A DNA stretch of 64,000 nt from Octopus bimaculoides (GCF_001194135.2 NC_068991.1:18021669-18085668); one strand, 5' to 3'; counted from the first letter of the stretch, positions 610 through 60,442 are shown. The notes: generated by a model from the letters alone, not told the origin. Translations and numbers: made by a program.

Positions 610-775
610 ACACTATTCAATTTTTTGTCTCCATATTCTTTCTGTTGAAGAGCGTAGCTCGAAACGTCAAAAACTTTCCGTATTCCCGAGCGTCATACTA
701 ATACATCCTTTTGTTATTTACACCACCTGTCCTCGTCTGTTGTTGTTTTTTCGTATATTCTCCCATATAGATATA
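610..775 (+). mobile_element. Penelope-like element terminal fragment, copy 1
   Basis: About 160 nt that is near-identical to the reverse complement of 3800-3960 and carries the hammerhead-like motif. A related fragment lies near 47520-47600. Confidence 0.55.
637..673 (+). ncRNA. Minimal type-I hammerhead-like motif (core variant CUGUUGA), Penelope-like element end
   Basis: UCUUU-CUGUUGA-A-GAGC(GUA)GCUC-GAAA-CG-UC-AAAAA, with palindromic stem III (ACGU) and a GUC site. An inverted sister copy lies at 3898-3934. Confidence 0.5.
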
Positions 776-2520
776 TATATATATATATGCCAGGCTTCTT
801 TCAGTTTCTGTCTACGAAATCTACTCACAAGGCTTTGGTTGGCATGAGGCTATAGAAGAAGACACTTGCCCAAGGAACCTCTCCTAAAAAAAAGCAATGA
901 GGAAACTTATTGAATTTCCATGTGAGATTATAAAGAAAGAGAAAAATAGACAAACCTCATCACAGCCCCTTGTTACAGTCCTTTGTCATAAGGTTCAGGT
1001 TCCTCTTGGCCTTCACCACATCTTCATAAGTCATCCTTTTCTATGAGTTTCTTCTATTTGGAATGCTTGGCACTTTTTACCCATATGCATCACATGTCTG
1101 TACCAGTTCAGTCTTCTCTCTCTCTCTTATACCCTGTTTTCTCTTAGTCCATTTGTACCATCATGCATGCACACTTCATTTCTTTCCAGCCTTCACTCTT
1201 TATTTGAATTGCATTTCAAACGTCATACACAAACTTAATACAGAGCGTTGCCTGAAGAGGTAACTCCCTGAAACATTTTCCACCTTGGTTTTAAAATAAA
1301 CAAACGATCCAAAAGAACAAATATATTTTTATATTTTAATTGTAGCAAATAAATACTAGGTTTTAGTAAAAGTTCTGCTTATCATTAAGTTTTTGACATG
1401 AAACCTAAGTGAGATCACAGAAATAAGTCTACATCTGAATTAAGAAACATTTTTTATGGTAAGGATTTCTAGTATTGGGCACAACAAGGCCACAGATTTG
1501 TAAAGGAAGAATCTAGTTTATAGAATCAACCCCAAGAATTAGACTAGTTATTTTATTAATGATGAATGGCAAAGTTTACCTGGTGGGTTTGGGGTGAACT
1601 CAGAAGAAAGCTGCCTTTTAAGCTTTTCATAATCATACATTCCATATATGAAAAATAAATGACACTTCATTAATAGTGTGAAAAAGTCTTTTTTTTTTTA
1701 TCATTCAGATATAGTTTACTTAGTTCCCTGTGTTTCATTTTATGTTTGATGTCTAAAACTTAAAATACTTCCAATATGGTCGATATATTGACCTCCCCAC
1801 CTTCCCATATAGAGGTGCTTTTAAGGTCTCTTTTTTTCTCCAGTATGATACTCCACATGTAAGCCGAGGGTACAATGAGTTGTGTATGTACCCTGCAGTT
1901 CTGAGCTGAGGTGGATTAGTAGACAGATAAGATGGACAAAAAAAAAAAAAAAGAAGAGCACCATATACTGAGTGTTGGAAGCAGAGAAAAGAAGACAGCA
2001 CCTAGCCATCTAGAAGACCTGCTCTGGGAAGATTACACACACATGCCTGAATTTATATATCAGTCCAACCCATGCCAGCATGGAAATGAAATTAAAAAAA
2101 AAAAAACAGACTTAAAATTTAAAGACAACAAAATGTGTGGTATATATATTGTACAACACACTTCTTAAAAGCAAGAAGCTTGACATGTTAAGTCACACAT
2201 GGACCACATTTGCAAATATGAGATGAAATTCATTTAAAAAAAAAAAAAAAACAACAAAAAATGAGATAGAGATGTTGATGTAATGGTTTTGTCCATTCCT
2301 GTCATTTTCTTATGTCAATTGTATTTTTTTTCATTTCCTTGTAATGATATTTGTTGACCTCGTTTTGTTGTTGTTCTTGATGTTATACATTCAAAAACAG
2401 TAATATATATGTGTGTATATATATATTTAAAAACAACAACCTCCTTCTCCTATTAAAACTTTGATAGGAATAGAATACTTCTGAATATATTGGTAAATCC
2501 ACTGGAATGCACTGAATGGG

Positions 2521-2646
2521 TCAAGACAGACAATAGTCACTTTCCATCGCATTCCAATCAATGTTGGCAAAAAACGGGTGTGCCTTGATGTCTTCAGCTC
2601 CATTTATCCCACTTCCAAGACGTTCACGAGGATTGTAGCATAACAA
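2521..2646 (-). CDS. RPS6KC1: RPS6KC1 exon 13, terminal ([41 protein letters not shown])
   Basis: Acceptor CTTTGCTTTTCTCAG|, AGC-type ERLG...EDIKxHPFF..IDW tail, stop TGA at 2523-2521. Confidence 0.95.
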   Translation of the reverse strand: MLCYNPRERLGSGINGAEDIKAHPFFANIDWNAMESDYCLS

Positions 2647-5600
2647 CTGAGAAAAGCAAAGAGAAATTTTAAGAAATATACCAACAAAACAAAATCAAGA
2701 CATATATTAGTGACAGAGGCAGTGTTAATACCAAGAGGTAATATTTATTCTGACTTAAACATGGATGCTGTTAGAACAAGGTATACTGCAGTAGATACTA
2801 TGAGAAACTCTCATATTGGCTTTTGGTGCAAAGTGCACTCGTTAACAAGCTCACAGGCACCTATTCTCAGCACCTATTCTGACACTGTTATTTTATATAA
2901 ACCAGAGTTTTCACCAAAGCTAATATGAGAGTTTCTCTCATGGTATCTATTGCAGTATAGTTTGTTCTAACGGAACATCCACGTTTAAGTGGGGATAAAT
3001 ATTACTGCTTGGCACATAAAATACACCATTTCGAGCGTGCCCATTGCCAGTAACTCCTGACTGGCCTCGTGCCGGTGACACGTAAAAGCACCCACTACAC
3101 TCTCTGAGTGGTTGGCGTGAGGAAGGGCATCCAGCTGTAGAAACTCTACCAAATCAGATTGGAGCCTGGTGTAGCCATCTGGTTCACCGGCCCTCGGTCA
3201 AATTGTCCAACCCATGCTAGCATGGAAAGCGGACAATGAACGATGATGATGATATTAATACTGCCAACAATCTCACTGGCTAATCACGACATCAGTGCCT
3301 GTTCTGGTACTGTCATTTTATATATCGCTGGCAGTGGGATGAGTTGTTATCTCTAGCATTTGAGTGTCCATCATTGACAAGATCAAGAAAGGTCAAAAAT
3401 CACATGATCTGGAGGTGGTGAGAAGTTATCTCCCTGTTAGTCTAGTAATATAAACGAGTGCATTTTTCACCAAAAGTCAATATGAAAGTTTTTCTCATGG
3501 TATCTACTGCAGTATAGTTTGCTCTAACAAAGTGGGGATAAAAATCAAGACAGTAATTACAGCACATCAAATGTAATGTCTTTCACCAACACACAATCAG
3601 TATGATCCATTTAATGTCCATGTTCATGCTGGCGTAAGTTGAACGGTTTGATGAGATTTAACAGATCCAAGACCTACATTGTGCCTCACTGTCTACTATA
3701 GCATGGTTTCTACAGTTGGATACCCTTTCTTAACACCAACCACTTTACTGCATATACTGGGTGCTTTTTCAATGTTACCAATATATATATATATATATAT
3801 AGAAAGGAGAATGTACGAGAAAAAACAACAACAGACGAGGACAGGTGGTGTAAACAACAAAAGGATGTATTAGTTTGATGCTCGGGAATACAGAAAGTCT
3901 TTAACGTTTCGAGCTACGCTCTTCAACAGAAAGAATACGGAGAAAAAAAATTGAATGGTGTTTGGTCAGCGATGTAAAAATATGTGACACTTATTCGGTA
4001 GCTATGATAAAACTCCAAGTTTCGGATGCTGGGGTGGGAGCCCACGCCAACATCTCTTCAGCTATCCAGCCATTGAAAATTCCTCGGAGTTTTATCATGG
4101 CTACCAAATAAGTGTCACATATTTTTACAGATAAATTCCTCTATTTACATAATATCGAGGTCTCTTTCTTTCTTTTGTTGTCCTTCCTAGCAATAAATAT
4201 ATATATATATATAATCCAACAACATTCTTTGGACAAATTTTTTAATGGCATCTTGACCAGAGATCAATAATGATAAAAATTGGACTCACTTCTTCCAACA
4301 GGCCTTGAGCCTCCATTGAGATATGAGATGGAATCAATAACTGAGTATGAGATGTAATTCCTCCAGGATGACAAGAAGATAAGCGCTGAAAAAAAAAAAA
4401 AAATCTTTCAAATTCTGGGGCAAAGCTTACAATTTTGAGAAGAGGGGTAAGTCAATTACACTGACCTCACTGTTCAACTGGTACTATTTTATTGACCTTG
4501 AAAGAATGAAAGGCATGATAAGTGAAGGCACTGTTTGGGTAGTCAGCTCTCTCATGGCTCTATTTCTAATGAAAAACATCGCTTATGTGCCTCAATTAAT
4601 TCTCAAAACGGTCAAAAATTTTGAGAGATTTAGTGAAATAATTAACTTTATCAGTTTTGGAAAATAAATGAAAGGTCCTTTGTCATATTCTAGTCTTACC
4701 TCTTCCAATAGCCATGCCCCTACCAAAGGCTCTGTGTCTTGCAAGTTACCTTGCTGGTACTGGTGCCACATAAAAAACACCTAGTCCACTCTGTAAAGTG
4801 GTTGACATCAGGAATAGCATCCGTCCATAAAAACTATGCCAAAGCAGACCTTGCTGCTACTGATGCCATGTAAAATGTACAGAGTCTAGTCTGTAAACTG
4901 GTTAGCATTAGGAAGGGCATCCAACCATAAAACCATGCCAAAATAGACAGTGGAGCTTGCTACAGTCCTCTAGTTTGCCAGCTCTGGTCAAACTGTCCAA
5001 CCCATGCCAGCATGGAGGATGGATGTTAAATGGTGATGATGGAAGATTTTCACATAATTATGAAAAACAAGAGAGATTTTGTGTTAAAGAACTTGAAATG
5101 GTACTATTTAAAATAAGAATGTTATTGGAAATGATTTTTTTTACTGTCCGGAATAAGTAATAATATTTGGTTGGTCTTAAGATCTTAAGGATATAGAAAT
5201 GGAAGTACTGTATCTGATGGCATATAAGATACCCTTTTTTGTTTCAAAACTACCTTAGGCCTTATATTATAAGCCTTAATGCACTAAAAACTTTTTCCTG
5301 AATATGCACTGTTGAAATTGGGATGCATCTAATTTACACATGTGTATTTTATGTCATCAAATACAGTTATTGTTAAGAAGATCTGTTTTACTCCGATATA
5401 AAACAGCAGGTCTTTAGGATTGACTGATATTCTTCAGCAATAAAAACACAACAGTCATTAAGAGAACTTCTATGCAATTACTTAACCTGTTCAAAGTAGC
5501 AGCAAAATATCTTCACAATAAAAAACATCCAATGAGTTTAACCCTCTCAGACCTAGGCCCCTGTGTCTAACTTTACCCTCCATTTAGGCTTCTGAGCAAA

Positions 5601-8600
5601 AAAATAAATAGTTGCATATATAGCTCAAGAGTAACGATAGCAGGCAAACTAATGGACAGAGTCGATAGCATCTTTTTCTACGAGTTTACCAGAAATCCAG
5701 CTGAGCTGATGTTTAACCTATTCTCGCAGAATATGTGACAGGGTTAAAATATAACTCAAATATCATTTTGTCTTGAATCAGTTAAAATAACATGTTCCAC
5801 AGTTTTAAAAATAAGATAACGTGGTTAAGAAATTCTGATAAAATATTCTGTTTGATCCAGACTGTAGAGTGATGTCCAAACGAAGCACACAACTAACTGA
5901 AGCTATTACAACTTAAACTACAATATCTCCTTGTCACAATACCAACATCATAAAAAAAAAAACAAGTAGAAAGAAATCAACTGACTTTTCCAGAAAGCAG
6001 CTCAAATAACAAGGCACCAAAACTCCACCAATCACAGACTTCTGTATGTCCAGATATGCTACAAATTTCTGTAAAAAGAACAAAAACAACAACCACATTT
6101 TTAATAATGTCAATATCAATTCTATGTGTTATTCATGAAATAATATCAGGCTGAGTAAAAAATAAGCAACGTTTTAAAACATGAAATTCAACACAATATA
6201 TTTCAACAATGCAGAAATTTTATTCATCGAAGTAAGTACCATTACAATCAACACATTTTTGCCAACAAGTTATAAGTTTGTTTATTCCAGCAACATAAAA
6301 ATCTAGAGTTCTTGAGCTGATGGACTCTTTGAATGCACTTTCAGCATTGGTTTAATTCTTGAACTCTTTCTCTTATAGGAAACCATCAAGGTGCTTGAAA
6401 AAGTGGTAGTCATTGGGAGAAAGGTCTGGGGAATAAGCTGGGTGGGGATGAACTTCGCAGTCAAGTTCCCTCAACTTCTGGAGCATCATCATATTACAAT
6501 GGGCGTAATGTCCATCCGTCTATCTGTACTCACATCACGGCCAAACGGTTGGGCCGATCGGCATGAAACTTTGTAGGGGTGTTTGGGTGGGGTCTCTAGG
6601 GTGGTTTATATATAAGTTTAGTTCCCCCACCCATATTTTCAGAGAAATCCCATCAATTGAGGTAACTTTGGCAGAAGGAATAGGGTGGCCTCCTAAAGGG
6701 ACATGCTTGACCTCCTCCTTCTGCCCCTGTCCCACCACCCCCTGACCAAGTAATACCATCAATTGAGGCAAATTTGGCCACAAAGCTGCAACTGCTTCCA
6801 CCATTGCTATGAGCTGCTGCTGTTGCTGTCATCAATAAATAAATGTGCCTGTGAATTTGTTCAGCAATTATAAATTAATTTGTGTGTGAATTTCACATAG
6901 CCAGCACATCTCAAATGTAGTCTTCCTTTTATCATGAGAAAATTGCTATAGGTGCAAGGGATCAAAGAAACTGCTCAACTGGGAAGTGGACCAATGTAAA
7001 AGATCACCTTTTTAGGAGCAATACTGAGCACTTCATACACCAAACTAAGGAGATTCGACACAGTCACTCAACCTGCTAGGAAAATGTAGTGCTGGATTCT
7101 GAGCATATTGGAGAAAAGATAAATCTGCTTGATCAAAGGTGATCTGATCTGGAGCAAAATATCAACTTTTCATAAATAATAAAGTTCTTTCACTCACCTG
7201 GTGCAGTATACATATTTTCAACAGCCCAATCGTCTAAAGGCTGGTCAACATTGTTCATTTGACAAAAGTATGAGATCAATACGTGACCTTTCTCTCCAAG
7301 TAGAACATTTGAAGGTTTCAAATCACTGGAAGAATAAATTAAAATAATAAAATAAAGAAAAAAAATACAACATAAAACTTGTTACACATTTAATATGCAA
7401 CAACAGTGAATGTTACTGTCAACCTTAGTACTTCACTGGTTGACCCCTGTATTTTATATATATTGTTGGTTGAGATATATATATATCTAATTATTGTTCT
7501 ACTTACGATCTGACGAGTAGCTATATTTTTGAATAGAATTTATTTTCGATAATTTCAATTGATTTTAATCGATTTAAATTTCTTTTCTATCTGAAAATTA
7601 GTTATGAAACACGTGTAATCTTTTTATTATATTTATCTTATGATATTTACTTTACTTTATATTATACTCATTTATTGTGCTACCGAGGCGATGACTACTG
7701 ACCGAGACCTTTGGAAATGTGCTGTGCGTGAGAAGACCCGGCAAGCCAAGTAAGATCGTTGCCAGTACCCCTGGNNNNNNNNNNNNNNNNNNNNNNNNNN
7801 NNNNNNNNNNNNNNNNNNNNNNNNNNNNNNNNNNNNNNNNNNNNNNNNNNNNNNNNNNNNNNNNNNNNNNNNNNNNNNNNNNNNNNNNNNNNNNNNNNNN
7901 NNNNNNNNNNNNNNNNNNNNNNNNNNNNNNNNNNNNNNNNNNNNNNNNNNNNNNNNNNNNNNNNNNNNNNNNNNNNNNNNNNNNNNNNNNNNNNNNNNNN
8001 NNNNNNNNNNNNNNNNNNNNNNACCCACTACACTCTCTGAGTGGTTGGCGTTAGGAAGGGCATCCAGCTGTAGAAACTCTGCCAAATTAGATTGGAGCCT
8101 GGTGTTGCCATCCGGTTTCACCAGTCCTCAGTCAAATCGTCCAACCCATGCTAGCATGGAAAGCGGACGTTAAACGATGATGATGAACGATGTGATAGTG
8201 GATTTTCATCGATGAGTTCTTGAAACTTGGTTATTTTCCCTAAAATTATATATATATATATATATATATGTATGTCCCTTGTGAGTAGACGTGATGAATG
8301 GAAACTGCTTGGAAGCCCATATATTTGTGCTTATGTGTGTGTGGTCCATGTCTTTGTCTTTCCAACTGCTATCTGAATGTTAGCACTATTTCACAGCTTG
8401 TGTTTATTTACATCTGTAACTTAGCAGTTTGGCAAAACAAGACCAATAGGATAAGTGCCAGACTTTAAAGTACTGGGATTAATTCAATCAATTAAAACCC
8501 CTTAAACAGTCTGGTGTGCTTGCAGTCTAATGGCTGAAACCAGTAAAAGAGCATACACAAAATAAAAGCAAGAACAAAAGAGATTCAACATGGGGTGTCA

Positions 8601-11600
8601 TTCACCATTACATGATCTAAGCCTTCCAAAGGGAGCTCCAGAACTGTATCCATCTGGATCTCCTTTCCTTGTTCAGGATCTTTTCCCTTATACAACTTTC
8701 AAGATTTCAAACTGAACATTACTCTGACTCATTTACTTCTATATCCAAGACTAACAAAGCCTGAAAATGCCAAGGACAACATCCACACCATCTCAGACTA
8801 AATGGAGAAGGAAAAACAAACCTACATAGAAAGTTGTAGAAACCTAGTTACCAAATGTAAAAGAGATATTGAATTGCTCGCTGGTAGATGTTGAGTTCAA
8901 TTTAACAGAAAGCAGTTTGTTGTGTATTTAGGTAATGCATTTAATTGCACAAGTTTCAATTCAGCTAGTTGTTGGAAACAGATATGTCCCTACATGTTGC
9001 ACACACAAAAACTCACAGGCTCAAAGCCCACAAGTGGTTCAGTTGTAACTGTGCTGTAGCATTTGAAGCAAAAAACATGGATTATAATGCTTAGAAGAAA
9101 ATCCTCCTCATCTACAGCCTAGTTCTGTGAGCAGTTCTCTAGCAAAGAAAGCTTCTACTACAAACTGGCATTCAGAAGTGCCAAATAAAACTAAAGCATA
9201 GCAACAACCCTTAAAGTTGCCTCTATGCTTAAGAAACATAGCTTACATTTTAACAGAAAATCCCTTGGTCAAAGGAATTCAACATTATTCAATCACTACC
9301 AACACTAACTGTCATCATCATCATTATTATAACTTGGTATATAAAATAACAAGTCTCACTTGCATCTTAACTCTTCACTGCTATCAAAGAAACTTATCAG
9401 TGTTAATTCCTGGTACTGCTTCACCCAGCTCCTCCATTTACATCACACACTCAATCCATTATGTTCACATCTCCATCAAACATCCACTGATATCATTGAA
9501 AGCCAACTACTTTCATTTTTTTTTTCAACAGACATCTAAAATTGTAAGTGCCACAAATAGTAACTTTAAGATCTACAATGGTTGTGAACAGGATCTTCAG
9601 GAAGCCTTTCTTAGTTCCCAGTAACATAGAGCTCAAGTTATTTGACTAAGGTCACTGACTTCTTTGAGCTGTGTACCATTGTTTCAACAAATTGACAGGC
9701 AGATTTCATCTTCATTGATGGTCATATATTTAGTCATCTATACATTTGAGAAACAGAGTGACCTATGAAGAAGGGGTTTCAAGATTGCCTTGATGGTACC
9801 TACAAGTTTCTCTTGATGAGTTTCAACCTCTCATGGCATGAACGCAAAACCAAAGAGGAGATTTATAGACACATTCCACTCATTTCTAGTACTATTGCTC
9901 AATGCAGGATAAGGCTTACTGATAACTGTTATTGTGCAGAACACCAGGCCATATTGGATGCCATATTTTGAAGACTTTTACACCCTCATAGAGGACAAAG
10001 ACCATTCAGCTACATTTATGCTATTGGCCGACTTACACCATGAAACTGAGGACCTGCCAAAGCTAAAAGAAGAAAAAGAAGCCTGCTGTAGTGTTGTGAA
10101 ACACATCTAATTGTTTGAAGAAGTTGTGAACATTTGAAAAATACTTGGTATTGTACGTGTGAGAGGGGAAGAAAGAGATTGTACAGAAGGTAACTTATAA
10201 CTTCATGGCCAAGACTTCAAACTTTACTCCAGCTAGCAATGATGCCGCTATTGAGTAAAAAACATCCCTCTTTGATAGACCAGCAATTTTTAGTTCACAT
10301 CTGAGTGGCTTGAGGCAGAATAGGAATTCAACTCTAAACAATTGCAAAAATATGCAATTCATATTTTCTTGTCAGAAGAGAAAAATGAATGCAAAACAAC
10401 AAAATAAATCAGACCGGTGCAGGCATGGGTGTTTGGACACAGAGTTCACTTTATAAGCATATAATTTTTTACTAACTCACTACACAGCACTGTGAGCAAG
10501 TAACTTCAACTGTAGCCAACCAATGCCTTGTAAGTAGAATTGGTAGATGGAAACTATAAAAGTCTATTGAGAGAGAGAGAGAGTGTGTGTGTGTGTATGT
10601 ATATATATATATATATGCATGTGTGTGGATGTTTACATTCTACTGCTTCACATGACACCTAGCAAAAGAAAAGAAGTGGTGCTGACATTCCCTTTCAACA
10701 AATTATCTACTAGCTCTGTGCTTTTGAAGGCATGTAGAAAAATCCATTACTTGAAAAAGCAGGTAAGTGTTAGGGACAGGAAGTGCACCTGGCTGTAAAA
10801 TAAAACTTCAATAAGTATTTATCCAACTTGTGACAGCAGGGAATCCCTCACCCCACCCAAAAAAAAAAAATAAAAATAAAAAAATAACGGATGTAAAATG
10901 AACAAACGGATGTAAACCCACACTCATACAAAGAAGAAATAAGAGATAAGGAGAAGGAAGAGAGAAAAGAGGAGCAAGGATAGACTGAGAAAGAAAAAGT
11001 TACTCACCGACAAATAATACCCTGATCATGCAAGTATGACAGAGCAATCACAACTTCTGCTGCCCACTGTTTGATGCAAGATTCCGGTAGCACAACTTCT
11101 GAAGACCAGTTCCTACTACTGTCAAATTCTTCAAATACTTTCCACACTTTACTTTTTGAAGGTGACTTCAGATCACACTCAAATGATGCAGACCGACATG
11201 GCTCCATAAATGACTGTCTAGGAATGCCTGTGTATGATGTTGTATTGTGTTTGGTGGACTTTTGACTGAGACAACTACAGTCATTGGTAAAGTCTGATGT
11301 TGCAGCTATTAATGGGGCTGTTGTGCTTTCTTTCTCATCTTTAGAGTTTAAAGCTTTCTTTGTTCCACTATTGCCTTCTAAACAGTCTGTCTTAGGATTA
11401 GAGTTTTTGGTTACAGAAGAAACTAAGGTATTTATACTTTGAGATTCAGAATAATTCTCTGTTAAGTCACTCTTGACAACACTTAACAAACGTGACTTTG
11501 ATAGACTTTCTCCCTCACCAGCAGAAATAGTTCTTTCTCTAGAGTTAAGGCTGCTTGACTGCGAATGCATCTTTGGTAGACTGCTGGAATATTTATGAAG

Positions 11601-26000: not shown

Positions 26001-29000
26001 TGAGAACAGTGAAGTATATTGACCTCCCCCTCTCCCAGTTCTTGGGCAGTACTTTATTTCAATCAAATGTAGAAGGATGAAAGGTAAAGCAGACACTGGC
26101 TAGTTTTAAACTATAAGCATAGAGGGACTGAATTAGATTGTTAACTAAATGCATTGTGTTACATTTTCTACCAATTGTGTCAACCATTGCTCCCAGATTG
26201 CCATTAATTTGAATTTCTGTAGGTCTATTATTAAAAAAAAAAGTACTGTTGTAAAATCAGGGTTTACTAAACTCAAAACAGAACCAAGAATGAATGCTTG
26301 AGAGAGTTGGAATGGAGTGAGGTAGAAAGAGAGAGAAAGACAAAAAGAGAATGGACATACACATACAAGCATAAAGACTAACATCTTTTTTAATGGTTTA
26401 ACCTGGAGGAAGGTACTGTGGCCATGTCACTGCAGCCATCTAAGATCAGTGAGATTGCTGTGCTTTTTTTTAACCAGGTCTAAGAAAAGGCTGAAGAATT
26501 AACCTTTTCATAAATGACAGAGATTTATAAGGGCAGTGTTCAATTTCTAGTTTCCATAGAATATTCCTCAAAGAACTAAGCAGAATGAGGTTACAAAAAT
26601 TTTCTCCCAAAACACCAAAACATTAGAGCTCGTTATTTCTTATATATATCTCTGAAATGTATTGTGACAAGTGTAATCACTTAAATTTGATCTTTTCTAA
26701 TTCTACTTCCTCACTTAAGTGATACTATTTGGATTGTATTTTCATGGAAAAAAGTCTTTCCTGCATTCGTCTACAACATGGTTGTCATTGAATGAGAAAA
26801 TAAAATTAACAAAAACTAACTGATGCTAACAGAAATCAAAATCAAGTGTTAATTAAAAATAATGATTCCTAGCTTTAGCATGAAACCAAAAATGTTTTCT
26901 GGGAGAAGGGAAATGAGATTAAATTAATGACAAATTACTTGTTCTTGTTCTATCACTCACAGAAGAATGAACAGAAGACTTGACCTTTGTAGGGTTTGAA
27001 TGTAGAATGTGGAAAAAAATGCAATTAAGCATCACAAAGGATTATGTACATCAATGCAAGTTAAAATAAGATATTTCTCAATTAACCCCTTTAATACCAA
27101 TCTGCCTAAGGCCACTTCATGTTCTATAATGCAAACTTCTTGTTCTAAAATTACCTTATATAAAAATTTCATGTCTAATATAGAATTCAAACACCAGTCT
27201 AATAACACTAAAGTTATTTCACTAAATTCTTCATGTTCAAAATTAAGTGAAGCAAAGGTAGTAAGTATATTTCAACAGAAATATGGTAACAAAAGGGTTA
27301 AATAATTTCAACCATTTTTCTGAGAAATTTAAACGAGTATTTTCAAACCAACAATAAAGCTTAGAGCGCAAAGAAATGCAATAGTTTCTAGGATAATTCA
27401 ATCAGATTGTATGAATGTAATACGGATGTGTAGACTCTGAGAGAGTTTGATGAGGAAAATGTAGGCCAATTAAATAGATTCTGTACTTGTTGGTATACAC
27501 TTTATCAAACCCACCCCTCAAAGAAATAAAAGATAAATGTGTCCCAGGTGTGATGAGAAAAACAAAACAAAAAATAACCAGCGCTCTACATTTCTACCAC
27601 ATATGTTTTACTTAATATATAGTACCAATAATAAAACAAAATTATTCCATTTGATATTCTGCCATAACTAGGATATTTTTGTGACATTTATTGGGGGAAA
27701 ATAGGGCAATGTTAAACAGTAATCACTCAAAATTTAACAGAAAGTCAAAAACTTACTGTAAAGTATCTGAAATGTTGATGGGAATCAATAAAATAAAGAA
27801 ACTGCATTTAAATAGCTATCCTGTTTTGACAGTAAGGGTACTTTTGTAAAGATGTACATAAGTGCTAAAAAACACCATCAGGGATGTCAAAACAGTTAAT
27901 TTTATAGTCTTGTTTGCATTTTTTTTAATTATTATTTTTTTTCAGTTCAGTACACAATCACTCGCCCATATATATTCACATACATGCACACAGATGTTCA
28001 TTTGAGAACGAGGTGGTTAAAACGGCTTCTTACCAAAATATTTTGGCTTTGCAAATTCGGGGAAATCTTCTTTGCGGTGGAGCGCCTTATGAAGAGCTAA
28101 CATAGATTTGTGAAGACGTTTGAAATCATTGTAGCGTTTCCAGACATTTATCTAGAATAGAAGTAAAGAGAAAAACACCACTGTTTGACTTGGTAAAACA
28201 ACACGCTTGGGCAGTTGGGGGCGATGTATCTGTAGAGTATTCACAGCCAGCATTAGGGTGGCTGAATGATAAGTGATGATGGCAGTCAGAAGGATGAGTA
28301 GATTAAGGGTGGGGGAAGCTGGATTGAAACACACTGCTGTTGTTGTTTATCCCCATATCAACTCTTGTCAAGCAGAACTATGGCTAAAAGCATTCCATTT
28401 ATGACCAACCAGCTTATTTTCATAGTATACCTAGAGCCACAGTATCCAAAGTTTTCTTTTTTAAGATGGTAAGGTGAAGTTGGCTGCTGTTTCTAGCAAG
28501 ACGAGTCACCAGGTTGAGGATCTCTCAATTGGAGGTGGGTTGTAGCGGTATGTGATGGGATAGAGTGGCAGATTGGGGAGGAGGATGGAATCAAAAAGGT
28601 GAAGGCAAAAATAGCTGAGGAAACAATAGTGAGATGACAATATGGATAATTAGAAGGGTAACAAAATCATGGAGAGAAGGACAACAAGGAATCAGGGGGC
28701 ATTAGAAAGAGAATAAGTGAGGATGAAAGAAAGTCTTGGTTGGAACAGACTAGAAAAAGAAAAGTTGGAAGGAGTGACAGCATGCACTAGGAGAGAGTAG
28801 AGGAAGAGAAAGAAGAACAATAAGAATGTAAGAGGCAAGTAGGTAGGTGAATGGGTGATATTGCATGTGTGTGTGTGTATGAAGCACAGTAGGCAAGAAG
28901 GTATATTAGTGCTGGAGCCAATATGATATGAGACAAGAGTAGAGTCATATCCTAGGCTTGATAGAAAAGAAATCAAAGGTGGTAGACTGGAGTAGAGCCC

Positions 29001-29281
29001 AATTTACTACAGTGACTGAGAAAGGGAGGACAAAAGAGAGAGAGAGAGAAAAGAGAGAGAGAGAGAGAAAAAAGAGAGAGAGAGAGAAAAGAGAGAGGAA
29101 GTAAAGAAAAGGAGAGTGAAAGTTGAGTAATTTGGACATCAAAAGACCAAAGTAAAGGAACTATTTAACCTCAATCAACTGAGTCTTTAATCAACTGACT
29201 TGGTCAATTGCAACACTATAACATACATACACACATATATATCATTATCATTGTTTAACGTCCACCTTCCATGCTAGCATG

Positions 29282-29380
<99 letters not shown>

Positions 29381-30298: not shown

Positions 30299-30355
<57 letters not shown>

Positions 30356-34652: not shown

Positions 34653-34700
<48 letters not shown>

Positions 34701-34877
34701 ACAAAGAAGGTGCTTCTAACCACAAATTCTCAAAATATTATATGTGCCCTATTTGACCCCACAAAGCTCCCAGTAAAAACTTTGACAATACAACACTGAG
34801 TTAAAACTTAAACGATACTAATGTACTAACAAGACACATTCTGGCTTGTTTAAAAAATATATCTGTGCATGTGTGTG

Positions 34878-34933
<56 letters not shown>

Positions 34934-37900
34934 AGAAAAAGAACTTGTTATAGAGTGGTGTTTGGGGCCTATAATAGATGCAGTATTTCAAAAGTGAAAA
35001 ATATCAATGAACAAACTGGCAGGAATCAAACTATACATCTTTTGCTCACTTGACAACTGTGCAATCATACATAATAATACTTGTTTCTAATTTAGATGTA
35101 GGGGAGCAGTCAGTTCTATCGAGCCCTGTACTTGCATGGCATTTCATTGACTCAGGAGTGATGAATGGCAAAGCTGATCTCAATGGGGTTTGAACTCAGA
35201 ACATAATAAAAAGCTGGAGCAAGTACATTGAGGTATTTTTTCTGACTGTCTAACAATTTTGCCAATCCAACAACCTTAATAACTAATTTAAGCATAAGAC
35301 CTCAAATTTTAGGAGAGAGGATTACTGACTAAACTGACTCCAGTACTTTTAGTTTATCAACCTCACATGGATGAAAAGCAAAGCCAACCTTTGATTTGAA
35401 CTCAGAACATCAGCAGCTGAAACAAATATGGCAGGGCCCTAACAATTCCTCTACTATAGGCACAAGACCTGAAATTCTGAGGGGGTTTGCTAGTTGGTTA
35501 CATCAACCCTGGTGCTCAACTTGTACTTACTTTATCAACCTCAGAGGAATGAAAGACAGTTGACCTCAGTGGAATTTGAATTCCAACAGTAAAGAGCCAA
35601 AACAAGTGCTGTAAAGCACCTTTTTTGGCTCTGTTGTAATTGTCAATCCAGCACCCTAAATGATAATTTATGCACATGGCCAGCAATTTTGAGAGAAAGG
35701 GATTAGTCCATATCATCAACCCTAATACTTGACTGGTACTTAGGCTATTGGTCCCAAAAGGATGAAAGTGAAGTTGGCTTCAGCAATATTTGAAAGTAGA
35801 ATGTAGAGAGCCACAAGAAATACCCCATGCCATTTTGTCTCATGCTCTAATTATTGTCAATCTATCATCCTGACAAATAATAATAATAATAATAATAATA
35901 AAGGTTTCAAATTTGGGCACAAGGCCAGCAGGTTTAGTGGGAAGGGTATAGTCAATTTCATCGACCTCAAATGGATGGAAGCCAAAGTCAACTTGGCGGA
36001 ATTTTAACTCAGTCTGTAAAGCCAGAAGAAATGCTGCTAAACATTTTGTCCAGTATGTTAACGATTTACCACTTCATTGCCTTAATAATAATAATCAAAA
36101 TGCTGGAGTTTAACCTAGTTACCATAGTGTATAAGTGAGTGAGATTACAACACTATTCCATGAATGGGAGGCCAGTCCAATGCAGAGTTAACTTCCCAGC
36201 CATTACTGAATCTCATTTACAGCCAAGCGGACTGGAGTAACATGAAATGAAAAGCTTTAGCGTTTTGCTGATGAATACAATATGCCACCTGGTAAAAAAA
36301 AAAAAAAAATGACCAGTACTAGAATGTCTTTGATTATAGGTCTCCTGGATCAAGCTTAATGTGAGGTAAAAAAAACCCAACAAAACCTGTGATTAGTGTT
36401 GAATAAAGTAAACATATTTGAAAATGCCTATATGTTCAATGACTCACAAATTTCAGACTCATTTACTCAAGGCATTAATGATTGTAGCAAGGACTGCACA
36501 CAGTGAGTGAAGGTACAATTACTAGAGCTACTTCCAGGCCCAATAGCAGAGCTGAAATTCAGCACTGTAAGTTAAATATATTTACTCCTTAATTATACTG
36601 TATCCTTGCTCCAGTTAATACAACTACTTGTAGCCATCCTGTGGTAACATACTGACTTAAGACTGGTTGCTACATTGAATAAGTCAAAGAGCTACATTGT
36701 CCAAACAAAACACTACAAAGCATTAATGATGTTGCTGGTTAACCATAGGTCATCCCTGACCAAGCAGACCAACAATCCAATAACATTCAAGCCATGATCG
36801 TCCTGTCTTTCTAAGGGTGTCTAACACTGCATTATTCAATGTGTTCTTTGTCGTTTGAGCTAGTGGATTTTATCTGAAGATTTAGGCTGGTATTTCTATC
36901 ATAGTAAATAACCATGTAGTAGCTCCCTAATGTTCTCGCACAGTGAATATGTAATTTAAACCACAGTCTTTAAATAAGAGGAAAGAGGGACAGAAATATA
37001 CAATATATATCATGGAGCTATTTGCTGTCCTCTTATGTTGTTTGTGAGACTTTATAATAAGACCATTTTATTTTTAATATCTTTTCATCAGAAGGGAAGG
37101 TAGGAAGGAAGGTATCCTCAAACTGGAGGTCAAACAAAAATGCATACAACAGAGTGGGCTATACTAAGAGCATCCGAGGTGGTAGATGGTGGTATGACAT
37201 ATTAAGTCAACCACCCAAGTAGATCGTGGCAGGGTTTCAACTCAGAATGCAAATATACTCATAAAGATTCTGCTAAATGTACATAGCAATGAATGAAAAA
37301 GCCAGTAATGAATTATGAGGTAGAAGTTTTAAGGTATGTATTTTGTTGTAAAAGGTTTTAGCTACAGCACTGAATAGGTTTATGGCCATATAATAACTTG
37401 TACTTTTGCTGACTAATCATGGACAAAACAAAAAAATTCTAATCGCAGTGTCTTTGTTTCTGAAATAAACAGTTATTTGTTAGTAGTCATAATCTGAAGA
37501 TAACTAATGTGTTTTCTTGGCAAAACCAATTCCTCATACTGATCAGACATCTGAGTTAGTGCATTTAAAATGCACATTAATATTCTGGACTACTTAAATA
37601 AAGGATTGCTTTTTTTTTTAAGAAGCAAACCTTCATTCACCAACACTTTCTAGCAACTGGTTTTAGTTGAGGACTCCCCCATAACTTCTCAATCACTACT
37701 GCCTCTATCTAGACCCATATAATGCATCCATCTCCTTTCCTGTCACACATCCACTGTCTTAACTATCAGAGCTCAAATTAAACACTTCCCTTAATATTTT
37801 CTGCTTCAAATTATATTCCTGTGTAAAACTGCCTTTCTGTCAAGGTTTCTCCACAAACTTTCATGTTAAACATTGGCTTCATTCATGTATTTTTAACTCG

Positions 37901-38395
37901 TGTGTTGATAAAACTTTTTTAAAGGTTTTTGGGCATCATTCCTTTTCTTCATAACAAATAAAAAAAAAGTCCCAAAACTCTTATTTTAGTGTCAATGTGT
38001 GATCCTTTATCTTGTGAAAGAATATACCAAAATCTGTTGTTTGATTACTGAGACAATGTTAACCTTAGAGATTTGGATTTATGGCAATGTCCTATTACTA
38101 GAAATTATATTTGAATTCCCAATCTTATTTTGGTTCATTATTAAAAAAAAATTTTTTTTTGGACCACTCTAAATAGCAGCTGACCTTTGTAAATTGATAG
38201 TCTTTAAAAAGACCCAAATCAACTATTACTGTTTGTTTAGTGAATATAATTTAGAAACGCAGACAATACACAAGTCAGAACACTGCATGCACAAAAGTAA
38301 TTCAGGATTATAGGATTAGTAAAGAATTTGTTTTAGATAAGGTGTCTCTTAGTAGAAAAAGATGTAGCTCATCAGATTTTATCAAAGATAATGCT

Positions 38396-38445
<50 letters not shown>

Positions 38446-41400
38446 TACTTGCACTGTTTCCATCAAATTAATTAAGCCAAGTTAGAAATAAAGTTTTTGT
38501 TATTGCATTTGCTCAGAGATGTTGAATAATTTATTCAGGACTAAACTATGAGTACTTCTACCACAGCCTGAGATTCTAACATGATTAGTACATGGCACTG
38601 AATAAAACACTCATTAATTACTAGTGACAGAAGTCATAAAGTAACAGACTAAATGCCTGACTATATTTCATTACCTTTATATTTTGAATTCCAATGATAT
38701 CAGTGTTAATAAACAAAGTGTTAGTCCTATACTGAGAGCAGTACATTTGATTATACTTATAACCCAACAAGTTAGAAACTTGTGAGTTAATTGGCGACCT
38801 CACTAGTAACCATGTACATCCAGTAAAGAAGTTTGTATTAGGAAGGGAATCCAGCCATAGAAACCATGTGAAAGCAGACATTGGAGCTTGACACAGTCCT
38901 TTGGTTTGTTGGATTCTGTCAAACAGTCCAACCCATGCCAGCATGGAAGATGGATATAAAATCATGATGATAATGATATTGCTAGCTGTATACAGGTGAT
39001 CTGCTTTTATTTACAATCAGACTGACTCATTAGTGAGAGTGGAAAGAATGGCAAGATCATGAACAAGTGCAACAATAACAAGAGAATGCAATCTGTCATC
39101 TGATCACCAGATAATCTGACACCCTATCACCTGAGCTCGTTGAGACTATGATGGTAATGGATAGCCTTAAAGAGATATAGCTTACATAATATCGATATGT
39201 CAGAGAAGTTGGAAAAAAAAAAAACCCCTCTGCAAATCATTTAAAAAAAAATGTCTATGTTTATCCCCATCTGCTTCTCTCATCACATCCAGCTGATAAT
39301 GGTGGTGGATACACTGAAGGAAAGGAATCTACCTTTATAACTTTTGTTCCAGTTACGATGGTCTAATACACCTATCTCACTATCCCACTCTCGCTCCTTT
39401 TCTCTTCCTCCTTATCATCATCATTCCTGTCAACTCTTCTTCCTCATCAGACTTTTCTACCTCTTCTCTAACTCATTATAATGTTCAATATCATAATTAG
39501 TAAATGCATTATTATTTTTATTATTTTCCGTTAGTAATATCAGCATGCATATTTTCTTCTACAGATTGTATAGCTGGTGCAGATTTGCCAAACCATACCT
39601 GTACAAATGTTGGAAAGTACAAGAATTTTAGAAGCAAGGGCATGCATACATACATACATGCATATACACATACTCACACATATGTGTATGTGTGTGTGTA
39701 TATATATATATTTAGAGGAATAACAGATATACAATAGGAATGATAGTAGGTTCATACAACCAGATTTAAGTTTTTTTTTTCATATTTTTCCAGAAAACAT
39801 TAGAAAAATACAACAACATGCAATGAATGAACAACAAGAAATAACAATTAAAAATAAACAAGAAAAAAAAAAAAGACCAATCAACTCCTGAATAGAAGTT
39901 CATCTTTTTTTATACCATGAGTATCAATATGGCTGATACTCTTTTTTAGCTTCTGTCGTGTTAAACAGATGACAGTACAGAATAGGATAGGATACTAATC
40001 CAGAACAGGTAATTTATCCACAAGTTGATAGCTATTTTCCATGATTTTATAACAGGGATAATGCAGAATTACATTGTATACTTCTTTAAAAAAAAAATTT
40101 TTTTAAAGAGTTGCCTGAGTCCTTAAAAAGTCTAACTTATTTTTTAATAAGAAAATACAAGGGTAATCTATATTTGAGAGAAAGGGTTTCTACCTCTGAA
40201 TACATTTTGGTGTGATATTCCAACCAGATGAGCCAATGAGGTAGCCTCTTTCTAAACAACAGCTCAACCTACAACTAGTAGCAGTAGCCAAATTTCCTTC
40301 AAAGCACACCATACCATTTTTTTTTTTAATGACCCTTTTTACTGGAGGTTCTATGACTGGTGAGAGAGAGGGAAGAAGGTATCCTCAAACTATAGATTTG
40401 CTCTGACTCCTTGCAACAGAGTGAACATGGCTAAAGGCATCTAACACTTTTGTTACCAAATTCCTGTGGCAATACATTTTGTGAGTTTTGATTTGTTTTG
40501 AAAATAACAAATTTAGTAAAATAATTCATTATTAAGTTGGTGTTTGGAACACAACATGAAATTTTGATGGAAAGTTTTTTAATACAGACCACATTAAAAC
40601 AGGAAGCTTGTAGCAAAGAATCAGGAGCAGTCTTGATTGGAACAGTATCAAAAAGGTTAAGGTGTATGTGTAGGTGTTAAATTGGGCAACAGATTAAATC
40701 TCTCATCCAAATAGGCCATGGTAGGATTTGATCTCAGAACATAAAAAGCCAGAAAAAATACTGCAAGGCATCTGGCCTGATACATCTTTTTTATATCAAT
40801 ACTGAAAGGATGAAAGGCAGAGGACAATTTTGGCAGGATATGAATTCAAAGCACATCATCATCATCGTTTAACATCCACTTTCCATGCTAGCATGAGTTG
40901 GACGATTTGACTGAGGACTGGCAAGCCAGGAACCTGCACCAGGCTCCAATCTGATCTGGCAGAGTTTCTACAGCTGGATGCCCTTCCTAACATCAACCAC
41001 TCCTAGAGTGTAGTGGGTGCTTTTACGTGCCATGGGCACGAGGGCCAGTCACACGGTACTGGCAATGGCCACGCTCAAAAAGGTGTTTTTTACATGCCAC
41101 CTGCACAGGAGCCAGTCCAGGAGCACTGGCAACGACCTCGCTCGAATGATTTTCTAATGTGCTACCAGCACAAGTGCTAGAAAGCAACGCTGGTAACAAA
41201 TCAGTATAATTACTGCAAAGCATTCCAGTTGATCTGTTAATGGTTCTGCTACTTTTCAACTTTTCGTGAATGGAAGAACAAATTGAATAATGCATTTGTA
41301 TGCGCGTGCGTGTGTGGTAGGAGTGCGACATATGGTGGTTGATGTATTGTGTGTGCTGCCACACCCAGTGCCACCAAATTTCAAGCAGGGGCATAACAAA

Positions 41401-56483: not shown

Positions 56484-56520
<37 letters not shown>

Positions 56521-59500
56521 CTACCTGGCCGGCTCCTGTCAAACCATTTCACCTATGCCAGCATTAAAGGCAGACGTTAAAATATATATATATATTAAAA
56601 ATGACTGAGAAAGCCACAACAGTGCAAGTTAAAGGTACAGGAGGTAAAACAAAACAAAAACAAAGGTTTTCACTTTTACTTTGTATATAAAGATGTTCCT
56701 AATCATGAATAGAGTGCAGAGATACTGTTCAAGAAAACCTGACAAGCAAGATTTAATGAAGAAAGGAAGAATGTTACTTGGTTGGAGACCAATGCCCTAA
56801 AGCAGGGATCAGCAATAGGTGAACCTACACTCACTGAGATGTTCTCAGTTAACCTCAGAACTTTAATGTATAAGCTATTGAGTACTTAATGGTTTTTAGA
56901 TATTAGTTACATAGACAATGCCAGTGATGGACAAGGAGGGATATATGTGTGTGGGGGGGAGAGAGGATATGTTTATATGTAAGATGTAAGTGGGACATAG
57001 AAAAATGTAAAAATGAAACAAAAGTGTGTTATTATGAAAAAGAGGAAGTGTTACTGATTCCTGCACTAAAGTATTGTATTTTGGAAGTTGTACTACGAAA
57101 GAATAAATGTATACCAACATTTATAAAGCAATGCAGGAAAAAATGAAAGTAACACTATGGAGACAGAAGGTGAGATATCACTGTGCACTTATCTTGGTGG
57201 ACTCCATATGACTGTCTCTTAAGACAAACGAGTACAACAAGGAACTAAATACAATAGTGAAATTCCTACTTCATCGAAAGTCCTATAGTTTTTAAAATGA
57301 GGCTAACATATTTATCAATCTCAAATTCAACAAAGACCCAGACTTTTTTATAGTTCACAATTGATAATGAAAATAGTAATGATATGCAAGAGAAGGTAAT
57401 AAAGATGAGCTGCAGCAGAAAGTCTTCAATTTAAATGCATCACATGCTCTTTCAGTTTTAAAATCAAATTGTTCATGGGTTGATTAGTTTCTCATCTCTC
57501 TGAGGTTGATACATTAAATAAACATTATAACTGTTCTCCTTGATCTCATGAAATTTTGACAATTTCTATTAAAATTTTAATGTCACAAGATGACAAAATT
57601 TGAAGGAAAAGAAAACGCATCTCTTGGAAGTGATATGTGTTCTAGTAATAAACTGGAGTCAACTCAATGGACACACATTATGTTAAACTGATTCTGTCTA
57701 AGAATTGCCTTAACCCTTTAGCATTTAAACCAGCCATATCCAGCCAAAATATTCTGCCTACATCAAGTGCCTGGGTGAAGAAGGTAGCTGCTGGAAGACC
57801 CTGTGTCTGACAATAGGACTTTGCACCATGCCACACAAGTGGGAGAACCCAGTCATGACTGTCAGACAATTTCTGTGACCACATCACCCCTAATATCTGA
57901 CCACATAACTCCTCGGACTGCAACCCCCTTGATTATTATACATGGAGCACAGTTGAGCAAGAGACCAACAAAACTACTTATAACACCAAAGATGAACTGA
58001 AGGCAAGGATTATGGCAGAAGAATTGCAGGAGATTCCAAAATATTCTGGAGGTTGTGATTGGAGCCAATGGTGATTTTATTGAATATATTTACTCTTTAG
58101 TATTTCATGATATTTTTAGGTAATTTTGGTAAATATACCTGTTAAAATAAGATGTCACTGTTATTTTCATTTTTGCATAATTTAGACAATAGTTAATTCA
58201 TCACACCCTGCATATATATATATATATATATATACACATACACACACACACAAACAAACACCATCATCATTTTAACACCCCCTTTTTCATGCTTGAATGG
58301 GTCAAATGGAATTCATTGAAACACTTTTCTGCAGCCAGATGTCTTTCCTGTTGCCATCTCCTACTTGTTTCCACGCAGTGTAATAATCCCCTAGTCCATC
58401 AAACAACGAACAACCCAAAGAATGTCCAGAAGATCAACATGCTTTTGCAGTTGTCTGCAAGCAAAGGCTACCAACTTTAGTGATTGCGAGGCTGTTGTTT
58501 GCAGCCAGTGAACACACATGAAGATGAAAAAAAATATCCACTCACACACACACACCTCTCTTGAAAAGCTGGTATGGGTTGATGAAAGAAAGGGTATCCA
58601 ACCATAAAATAATACCTTAATAAGTCTTCATTCAACTCATGCCAACATGGAAAAATAAATGCAAAATGAATGAAAGCAGATATATATACACACACTCTCT
58701 CTTTCCTTTCCTGAGCGTCCAATAATACTATCCATATCACGTCCTCACTTTGTTGTCTTTTTGTTATTGTTTTTTTTAACTATATATATATATATATATA
58801 TNNNNNNNNNNNNNNNNNNNNNNNNNNNNNNNNNNNNNNNNNNNNNNNNNNNNNNNNNNNNNNNNNNNNNNNNNNNNNNNNNNNNNNNNNNNNNNNNNNN
58901 NNNNNNNNNNNNNNNNNNNNNNNNNNNNNNNNNNNNNNNNNNNNNNNNNNNNNNNNNNNNNNNNNNNNNNNNNNNNNNNNNNNNNNNNNNNNNNNNNNNN
59001 NNNNNNNNNNNNNNNNNNNNNTATATATATATATATTAACAGAATAAGATAAAAATCCAAGGCTGTGAAAGATTTCTGAACATTTATAAATAGGTCTTAC
59101 AGCTGTTTCAATGATATTTTATATATCCCTTCATCGGAGGCAGTGTGAGAAAATGGTTAAGCAACAGTTATTCTAGATAAGATATGAAATAGAGAGTGAA
59201 GTGGAGGAATGAAAATAGATATGAGATATGCAGAGATATTGTATCTTCAGTTCCATATATTTAGGCAGAATGGTATACATATAAGATTAAAAAAACCCTC
59301 GGTTCAATAAAGACCGTTTACAAACTCTATGCTTGGAATGACCAATTTTAAATACTATTGGAACTTAATTACAAGGTACAGGAATCTTATATGTATACCA
59401 TTCTGCCTAAATAATGGAACTGAAGATACAATATCCCTGCATATCCCATGCATAACCATTGCTTACCATTTTCTCACACTGTCTCCAATGAAGGGATATA

Positions 59501-60442
59501 TAAAATATCCTGGAAACAGCTGTAAGACCTTCAATTTATAAATGTTCTGAAATCTTTCACAGCTTAAGATTTTTATCTCATTCTGTTAATTTTTTTTTAT
59601 ATATACATATGCTGATATATGACCTACGTTGGACTCCTCATTTGCATAATCACCAAACCTGGAGCTTAACTATAGTCTGTCCATAGCACTCACTCAGCAT
59701 TACCTGACACCTTTGGGTCTTCTTGACACCATTACCTCTCATAACCTATATATATATAGTATAGAATATCAGTCAACAACATTCACACATTGGGACTGAA
59801 CACCCAACTACATGGTTCATAACTACACAACCATGCCTGTGCCTAAACAAAGTGCCCATGATTGGAATCAATATACAGTGGATTAAAGTTATTATTTTAA
59901 AGCTAAGTTAAGAATAACAACAGAACATTTAATGATATGGTGACTCAATACTGAGAGTAGGTCGAATTTATGTTAAGAAATCAAGTTGACCTTTCAGCTT
60001 TTTGACCAGTATATATGTATATAAAATACAACTGTATGCATCCATTTTTAACGTTTTGTGTTTGATTTCATCTAAAACAACTTTCTATAGATGTATTTAA
60101 GTACTACACTAGCTCCAAGAGACATCAGTGAACTAACAGACACTAGTGTATTGATGCGATTCACCTCCTTAGTGATAAACATCGCCAATTTTCTTTCTTT
60201 TTTTTTTTTTGGAGTTAAACGGAGACAGCTAAAGCATGTAAAGGCTTTCCAATATGTTATTGGTATGCAAGGCAGTAAAAAAAAAAAGGATGTGTATATC
60301 CATTCTTAACACGTTCTGCCCACTCGAACGTGAACATGGCTTTTTGCCATTGGATTTTCTCCCTATGCACACACGAGTAATATTTTTTTAAATACATAAA
60401 TAGAAAGATAAGCAAACACAGATAACATGATGGTAATTTGAA

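Follow-up and report, generated by a model that had tools for sequence, protein, structure and literature searches.

The DNA analysed here, called the window throughout, is a stretch of 64,000 nucleotides (nt) from Octopus bimaculoides (GCF_001194135.2, NC_068991.1:18021669-18085668). It holds two long exons of a minus-strand gene (hereafter the host gene), a reverse-transcriptase (RT) fragment and a number of repeated and palindromic elements (Table 1), some of which carry motifs resembling type-I hammerhead ribozymes (HHRs). Eight such motifs had been listed in an earlier reading of this DNA (the original prediction) and assigned to about five unrelated families; the eight sites do fall into five sequence contexts (families a to e). 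Only three of them, at two loci, belong to the class that is supported by the analysis described below. That class is defined by the signature GAA-ACAxx'UGU-A, in which helix III is a loopless 8-nt palindrome, and its members in the window are four loci with six copies: 7507-7620(+), 15058-15140(-), and both arms of each of the palindromic elements 15544-15927 and 59022-59603. The loci 15058-15140(-) and 15544-15927 were missing from the original prediction.

Octopod DNA amounting to 105 kb was examined, that is, the window plus 41 kb from two octopus loci (L001 and L002, the latter an O. sinensis chromosome locus), and 96 kb of non-octopod DNA was used as the control. Class members are built of a helix I of 3-5 bp, the core box CUGANGA, a long helix II (a hairpin of 21-89 nt between the core boxes), GAA, the palindrome A-C-A-x-x'-U-G-U and A17. 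Among the members in the window the invariant type-I core is complete only in 7507-7620(+), where the full topology was found exactly as first described, and it is also complete in L002 at 1009, 1459 and 13899. The O. sinensis motif L002:1005-1087 has the same GAAACACGUGUA as 7507-7620 and a helix I that is different yet still pairs. The two loci are possibly of the same family; homology by BLAST between the 7507 locus and L002:1009 outside the motif was not confirmed.

Table 1. Features of the window. Positions are counted from the first letter of the stretch.
Feature	Position	Strand	Remarks
Sole intact class member in the window	7507-7620	+	Parse, signature, covariation
7507-7620, helix I	GAU 7507-7509 / AUC 7618-7620	+	
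7507-7620, core CUGACGA	7510-7516	+	
7507-7620, helix II	7517-7605	+	7 bp at base, long AU-rich hairpin
7507-7620, G12-A14	7606-7608	+	
7507-7620, loopless palindromic helix III ACACGUGU	7609-7616	+	
7507-7620, A17	7617	+	Predicted cleavage between 7617 and 7618
Class member in host-gene intron, sense to the gene	15058-15140	-	Helix I GGC/GCC; (TG)n after
15058-15140, core CUGUUGA (A6 to U)	15137-15131	-	
15058-15140, helix II UAGCUAGC/GCUAGCUA		-	8 bp, G opposite G at base
15058-15140, palindrome box GAAACAUAUGUA	15072-15061	-	
Palindromic element adjoining (TA)n	15544-15927		Self-alignment 90%, arm-to-arm 93%
15544-15927, GAAACAAUUGUA in the arms	15591-15602 (-), 15869-15880 (+)		
Head-to-head palindromic element (family e)	59022-59603		Arms 88-97% identical, one 47-nt indel
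Family a repeat	600-788	+	Contains 637-673
Family a, second copy	3781-3971	-	Contains 3898-3934
Family b foldback	3973-4131	-	Unit of ~105 nt (3979-4079, motif 4006-4066) plus its last ~47 nt inverted (4083-4131)
Family b, second copy	43384-43484	-	Motif 43410-43472, CUGACGA; 3' end runs into (TA)n
Family d palindromic element	52943-53203		Contains 53021-53056(-), mirror copy 53098-53155(+)
Host-gene long exon with kinase-domain pieces	11004-12671	-	Pfam scores just under curated cut-offs
Host-gene long exon ending in MIT domain	16541-17464	-	Pfam scores just under curated cut-offs
Degenerate LINE (long interspersed element) RT fragment	51357-52300	-	Protein homology, structure matches

The other members in the window carry changes in the core. 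In each arm of 15544-15927 a corrupted core with indels (CUG-AGA / CUGGAAGA) lies ~79 nt upstream of GAAACAAUUGUA, and a helix I of 4 bp (GGUC/GGCC) is kept in the right arm. The element 59022-59603, whose outer ends lie in (TA)n/(T)n, has as its arms the sites 59094-59141(-) and 59481-59528(+). These two had been listed together with 637-673(+) and 3898-3934(-) as core variants; as class members only the former pair stood. Their cores read CCGAUGA (59137-) and CCAAUGA (59485+), with U4 changed to C in both arms and G5 to A in one, and their helices consist of helix II GGGAUAU/AUAUCCU, GAAACAGCUGUA and a helix I of 2-4 bp. An inverted pair is also present in O. sinensis (L002 2915-2997(-) and 3063-3135(+)), and its arms share 5' rather than 3' portions. 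The first arm has all helices and GAAACAGCUGUA with the core CUGGUGA; the second retains the core CUGAUGA and loses homology before the GAAA box. Because the partner of the copy with A6 changed to G reads CUGAUGA, this family must once have had an intact core.

The numbers of matches were compared with chance by a null model that used, instead of Markov shuffles, decoys with scrambled cores run on the real sequence; these were normalised for frequency and matched for purines and pyrimidines. Descriptor tolerances were tuned on the sites of the original prediction and then frozen before use on the independent DNA. The class signature, GAAACANNTGTA, was found six times in the window against 0.47 expected, and none of 100 shuffles reached six; as GAAACAxx'UGUA it occurred three times in L002 and was absent from the 96 kb of non-octopod control DNA. 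When the centre and the last position were left free (GAAACA-NN-UGU-H), all nine matches in the octopod DNA had a complementary centre, so that each was a perfect 8-nt palindrome, and H was A in all nine; the centres CG, AU, GC and UA all occurred, and control frames gave 0-2 matches. Of 14 octopod matches to the looser frame GAAAC-N4-GUH, nine were palindromes where 0.88 would be expected; the control had 11 matches, and none was palindromic. No enrichment was seen for the shorter forms GAAACGUH and GAAAC-N2-GUH or for an odd-centre form. The original statement that stem III is usually a short palindrome was thus correct and picks out the key real signal, restricted to the 8-nt ACAxx'UGU form.

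Palindromes were also used as anchors for the core. GAAA with a palindrome of 8 nt or more after it occurred at 19 sites in octopod DNA against two in the control, and an exact CUGANGA was located at most 135 nt upstream in five of the 19 (0.95 expected). Four of these five are 7510+ and L002 1009+, 13899+ and 1459+; at the fifth, 59513+, the CUGAAGA 93 nt upstream is unrelated and no helices are formed. At several further anchors a core with a single mismatch is correctly spaced, among them 15137- (A6 to U), L002 2992- (A6 to G) and 59137- (U4 to C). With the true core boxes, the tolerant descriptor found six loci (four independent families) in the window, for which 0.70 were expected after normalising for core frequency and 0.82 with purine/pyrimidine-matched decoys. 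In its frozen form it gave four matches in the two octopus loci (0.59 expected) and one in the 96 kb of non-octopod DNA (0.63 expected), and in three of the four new octopus matches a perfect palindrome of 8-10 nt follows GAAA directly.

These counts bear on the simplest alternative, namely that intron DNA which is AT-rich and full of repeats and palindromes contains a short degenerate pattern by chance, and that the motifs have nothing to do with hammerheads. It accounts well for several results: the strict descriptor found a single site in the window, 7507-7620, against 0.28 expected; a published-style descriptor with a helix I of at least 4 bp found none; the bare core test gave four matches against 3.5 expected, and one-mismatch 'core variant' matches were at chance level (13 against 8.6). 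It also agrees with the lack of an Rfam match and with the folding z-scores, which were unremarkable, including those of 7507 and 53021, except for the family b foldback. The signature excess and the complementarity of all nine centres, with all four types represented, are not accommodated by it, nor are the replication in independent octopus DNA and not in the controls, or the covariation of helices I and II. Chance is therefore highly improbable as a general account, and for the GAAACAxx'UGUA class it is already refuted.

The pairing itself was analysed in seven instances, cut at fixed offsets from the two core boxes and aligned without adjustment of single sequences. The consensus hammerhead pairing was realised in 87.5% of cells against 61.4% when partners were shuffled (0 of 500 shuffles as high), and when partners were slid by 1-3 columns pairing was found in 29-47% of cells. 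Both sides changed in 11 of the 16 pairs, and the covariation score was 0.738 against 0.229 for shuffled partners (0 of 500). Covariation was present in all four helix I pairs, and the centre pair of helix III showed all four Watson-Crick types. With five mutually unrelated instances the values were 87.5% against 62.2% for pairing and 0.806 against 0.274 for covariation; over the two analyses slid partners gave 28-50%. Three helices thus surround the core with compensatory changes between instances whose flanks and helices are unrelated in sequence, pairing being kept in a small sample (~6 independent loci). A covariation test had been proposed in the original prediction as a check, and helices I and II do covary among members unrelated in sequence. 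A covariance model built from the class returned the members used to build it and no additional site in the window.

The remaining five of the eight sites were not supported. The family a sites, 637-673(+) and 3898-3934(-), are 90% identical and have the core CUGUUGA, in which the invariant A6 is replaced; they scored 8.8 bits (E ~9, noise level) with the class covariance model. Conservation of the core did not hold for this family, since in an O. bimaculoides copy both core boxes carry substitutions, at the background rate, and with A6 replaced as well, family a was ruled out as a hammerhead. At 53021-53056(-) (family d) the predicted core is intact, with an extra A after A9 and a helix I of only 3 bp that sits in an indel missing from the sister arm; helix III is AUAU. 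Both arms of the element carry GAUCUGA(A/G)GA-A-GGAAUUG(C/U)AAUUCC-GAAAU and differ by indels exactly at the would-be cleavage site and the 3' strand of helix I. Folding z-scores were -0.8 and +0.2, the short AUAU palindrome form was not enriched, and the class covariance model did not report the element, whose resemblance to a hammerhead is at chance level. Chance is still the best account of 637/3898 and of 53021.

Family b (4006-4066(-) and 43411-43471(-)) is unproven. It has a complete CUGANGA...GAAA...GUU with a helix I of 5-6 bp, a helix II of 8 bp (one C/A mismatch in the second copy) and helix III ACUUGGAGU; the two copies are 79% identical, their only core difference is at the free N7, and one family was found at this stringency against 0.063 expected. 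The full consensus topology claimed for both sites did not hold, since an extra C stands between helix II and GAAA, 3' of helix II. Further points against the family are the lack of class-level enrichment, with no report from the class covariance model, the lack of further copies, and a competing foldback: if transcribed through, 3973-4131 would form a hairpin (-73.5 kcal/mol, z = -11) that buries the 3' strand of helix I, helix III and the cleavage site. Neither nhmmer profiles of families b, d and e nor a metagenome scan with the family b terminal inverted repeat (0 matches) gave further copies. Descent of family b from a real hammerhead is possible, though somewhat less likely than not. In Rfam searches 3973-4131 matched only a generic miRNA-like hairpin (mir-606 model, 20 bits). 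A first reading of the window, with mostly chance matches and family b as the sole candidate, was overturned by the replication in independent octopus DNA and the palindrome-anchor analysis.

The carriers of the class are short: between the end of the motif and an A/T-rich terminus, which passes into (TA)n, (T)n or (TG)n, lie 40-95 nt. Three elements of the window are head-to-head inverted pairs with the 3' side of the motif outward, and family b forms an asymmetric pair of a full unit and a 47-nt inverted 3' end. Insertions of Penelope-like elements (PLEs) have lost much of their 5' part and often lie beside an inverted copy that is itself 5'-truncated; they have hammerheads near their 3' end, show a (TA)n bias in some clades and tend to break short-read assemblies (PMC8557442), and PLEs are an abundant, partly recent order of transposable elements in octopus (PMC13282606, PMC8967140). 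The architecture of the octopod carriers, short and in several cases in inverted pairs beside (TA)n, fits this published pattern (PMC8557442). We therefore regard the four loci as short interspersed elements, probably 5'-truncated ends of PLEs, or non-autonomous derivatives of them, that bore minimal type-I hammerheads and are now inert relics. The original prediction had spoken of a diverse, unannotated set of PLE-derived ribozymes; a heterogeneous set of minimal type-I motifs was indeed found, and the derivation from PLEs appears well motivated rather than demonstrated.

Several observations weigh against this reading. The sample was small (105 kb of octopod DNA, nine signature matches, ~6 independent loci); a descriptor that requires helices I and II was the first to find three of the seven aligned instances, the anchor-based selection having no such requirement; and the interior of helix II was replaced by a TTTT linker in the pair-count alignment. 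Helix I has just 3-5 bp, and the pair G10.1-C11.1 is present in one of seven instances, unlike the published consensus: the 10.1-11.1 column pair (14-33) reads GU in two, GC, AU and UA in one each, and is unpaired in two. A 10.1-11.1 mismatch (G/G, A/G; A/A in L002:1459), readable as one unpaired base per side, was noted in three of the seven. The remaining class instances have no extra base after A9; family d has one, and in family b the unpaired base lies 3' instead. Searches with the Rfam hammerhead models (RF00163 and relatives), which the original prediction had also proposed, gave no match in the whole window at the gathering score or at E<=10, and none in windows of 106-351 nt around the candidates, intact ones (106-141 nt) included. 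Since intact, covariation-supported members also score nothing, this silence is uninformative, and we read it as a blind spot of the models for a loopless helix III with a long helix II rather than as counter-evidence. Standard annotation pipelines will overlook the class, since the Rfam models miss all its members. As to the carriers, no PLE RT or GIY-YIG gene was found in the window, the only RT being LINE-1/R2-like and GIY-YIG having been sought by a weak regex test, and three of the elements, 15544-15927, 52943-53203 and 59022-59603, have a symmetrical palindromic form in which both arms begin at one and the same position.

This symmetry would suit another origin equally well, in which the carriers are miniature inverted-repeat transposable elements (MITEs) or foldback DNA transposons, with long inverted repeats at their ends and TA-rich targets, and the hammerhead belongs to a DNA element or was captured as a fragment. 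Such an origin would also fit the L002 2984-3116 pair, which shares 5' rather than 3' portions; the lack of poly(A) tails, clear target-site duplications or a PLE open reading frame (ORF) nearby; and the Mariner-like ORFs near the motifs in L002, MITEs and Tc1-mariner elements being annotated in octopus. Two class loci, 7507-7620 and 15058-15140, are solitary and not palindromic, however, and the asymmetry of family b is as expected of an inverted 5'-truncated copy. Moreover, hammerheads with a palindromic helix III are documented in PLEs and retrozymes, and inverted adjacent copies are a documented outcome of PLE insertion. On balance a DNA-transposon origin is unlikely, and derivation from PLEs is preferred. 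No PLE ORF adjoins the L002 motifs. The motif loci are single copies or inverted pairs, and none of them is overlapped by a direct or tandem repeat.

Helix III is self-complementary in every signature match, and the mechanism may be envisaged by analogy with the known family. A single copy would be unable to close a loopless helix III; between two copies, base pairing of their palindromes would create an intermolecular helix III of 8 bp, and the resulting dimer would have two active sites, each cutting after GUA. In an active element such dimeric cleavage would process multimeric or tandem (pseudo-long terminal repeat, pseudo-LTR) transcripts. When two copies were cofolded, the full intermolecular helix III formed part of the minimum free energy dimer for two of the four motifs with an intact core; the other two were uninformative. 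No head-to-tail, same-strand copies of one palindrome type, as needed for the dimer, were found in the window. Core lesions are present in three of the four class loci (A6U, U4C, indels), and because the copies are in addition solitary or head-to-head on opposite strands, those in the window are most likely inert as judged from their sequence.

The centre dinucleotide (CG, AU, GC or UA) is particular to each element family. Differing centres would mispair in a heterodimer, and one idea is that the centre could limit dimer formation to members of one family. That all four self-complementary centres occur is a concise example from nature of selection on helix III for pairing with a second copy.

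The original prediction had also suggested that some of the motifs may act on host transcripts. In favour of active ribozymes that cleave or regulate the transcript of the host gene, 15058-15140(-) and one arm each of 15544-15927 and 59022-59603 are sense to this minus-strand gene, and the former two elements lie inside its intron. All sense-strand members are lesioned, however (A6U in 15058-15140, a corrupted core, U4C), and since the sole intact copy in the window is antisense to the gene, there is no basis for such action. The nearest same-strand neighbours, ACAUAUGU and ACAAUUGU, ~530 nt apart, would mispair at the centre, and published minimal HHRs of PLEs cleave poorly even as dimers (PMC4209133). 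Cleavage or regulation of the host transcript by these copies is exceedingly improbable, and the finding says nothing so far about regulation of the host gene. A broader proposal, also very unlikely, is that of a distinct and still active octopod variant, in which helix III would be loopless and fixed as ACAxx'UGU, the centre dinucleotide would be a family-specific dimerisation code, helix II would be very long, the palindromic, head-to-head carrier would be a new kind of non-autonomous element, and intronic sense copies would cut or circularise portions of host pre-mRNAs in the tissues of the octopus.

The octopod motifs were compared with known systems. Minimal HHRs of PLEs have a short helix I, an enlarged helix II and a palindromic or absent helix III, are extremely heterogeneous and are mostly solitary (PMC4209133). 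The octopod motifs are like them (Cervera & De la Pena 2014, PMC4209133) in their type-I topology, short helix I, enlarged helix II and a palindromic helix III that implies dimers, in a heterogeneous sequence around a constant core, and in being mostly dispersed single copies with some opposite-strand pairs 100-700 bp apart, in invertebrate genomes with PLEs. They differ from the published set in having a helix III fixed as 8-nt ACAxx'UGU with A17, a much longer helix II, G10.1-C11.1 in only one of seven instances and 10.1-11.1 mismatches in place of a single extra nucleotide in three of seven, and in being without a demonstrated PLE ORF or pseudo-LTR context (PMC4209133). The Penelope HHR variants of D. 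virilis, rotifers, shrimps and mosquitoes likewise have a palindromic helix III, a large helix II and a very short helix I (2 bp in D. virilis) and escape standard descriptors, as the octopod motifs do; those variants were mapped in the pseudo-LTRs of identified PLEs, and the D. virilis copies are near-identical, whereas the octopod copies are diverged and, in the window, mostly mutated (PMC4209133).

Non-LTR retrozymes, which have been linked to PLEs (bioRxiv 10.64898/2026.07.22.740005), are likewise non-autonomous, AT-rich and short and carry type-I hammerheads, dimeric in some (amphibians) (Cervera & De la Pena 2020, PMC7229834). They form head-to-tail arrays of 170-400 nt units and have canonical loop-loop contacts (PMC7229834), whereas no tandem array is present at the octopod loci. 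With the Naiad PLEs of cephalopods (Craig et al. 2021, PMC8557442) the octopod carriers share the (TA)n preference, inverted 5'-truncated copies, the condition of old cephalopod remnants and assembly breaks at insertions. Because Naiads are reported without canonical hammerheads (PMC8557442), the source is more likely to have been another PLE clade (Penelope/Poseidon, Neptune or Nematis) than Naiad.

In the best reading, then, the motifs are relics of the known PLE-type minimal dimeric hammerhead, which occurs together with PLEs throughout animals and is expected rather than surprising in a PLE-rich octopus genome, with the fixed ACAxx'UGU frame, the very long helix II and the weak 10.1-11.1 pair as local peculiarities. 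The word 'ribozyme' does not occur in the O. vulgaris repeat paper and no description from cephalopods was found in the searchable literature; the class is an unannotated feature of cephalopod repeat libraries.

The window has a G+C content of 35%, is densely populated by microsatellites, palindromic elements and short interspersed element (SINE)-like repeats, and contains four assembly gaps. No N lies inside any of the eight sites of the original prediction, and the closest gaps lie at a distance of 155 nt (from 7507-7620) and 73 nt (from 59094-59141); every listed motif was therefore read from continuous sequence. The left arm of 59022-59603 ends in (TA)n right at the gap 58802-59021, and its outer end was incompletely seen. 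Inverted repeats of 235 nt reported as '100% complementary' (55335-55569 and 58802-59036) were rejected as runs of N from two assembly gaps.

The kinase domain of the host gene is split, with a large low-complexity insert, and the intron between its two long exons contains the elements 15058-15140 and 15544-15927. Its nearest database relatives are 37-41% identical and unnamed, no octopus orthologue was recovered by protein search, and regex screens for kinase motifs gave no match. Directly downstream of the MIT exon lies a near-perfect hairpin (16277-16467) with arms of 87 nt, 92% complementary, and a loop of 17 nt. It gave sub-threshold matches to plant miRNA-precursor models (~82 bits against gathering scores of at least 200) and looks like a MITE-type foldback.

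The RT fragment 51357-52300(-) has its best named relatives in O. sinensis (79% identity) and Octopus bimaculoides (74%), and relatives of it often have DUF6451 (PF20049). Since its family matches the structures of LINE-1 ORF2p and R2 and not that of telomerase (TERT), it was assigned to a LINE and not to a PLE. Homologues of this RT on ENA and Logan contigs proved to be non-octopod. SINE-like families with many copies in both orientations were seen at 3065-3253, 8023-8186, 40855-41043, 21830-22250, 46965-47367 and other positions; such families of the window recur at ~80% identity in 41 kb of O. bimaculoides and O. sinensis chromosomes, with no recurrence in five other fetched loci. Two direct repeats of 245 bp (50228-50471 and 54082-54323), 92-94% identical and 3.85 kb apart, bracket the LINE fragment and the family d element. 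They were rejected as pseudo-LTRs around the RT, as homology stops abruptly on both sides and they have no hammerhead core; they probably represent two copies from a further SINE-like family and not LTRs.

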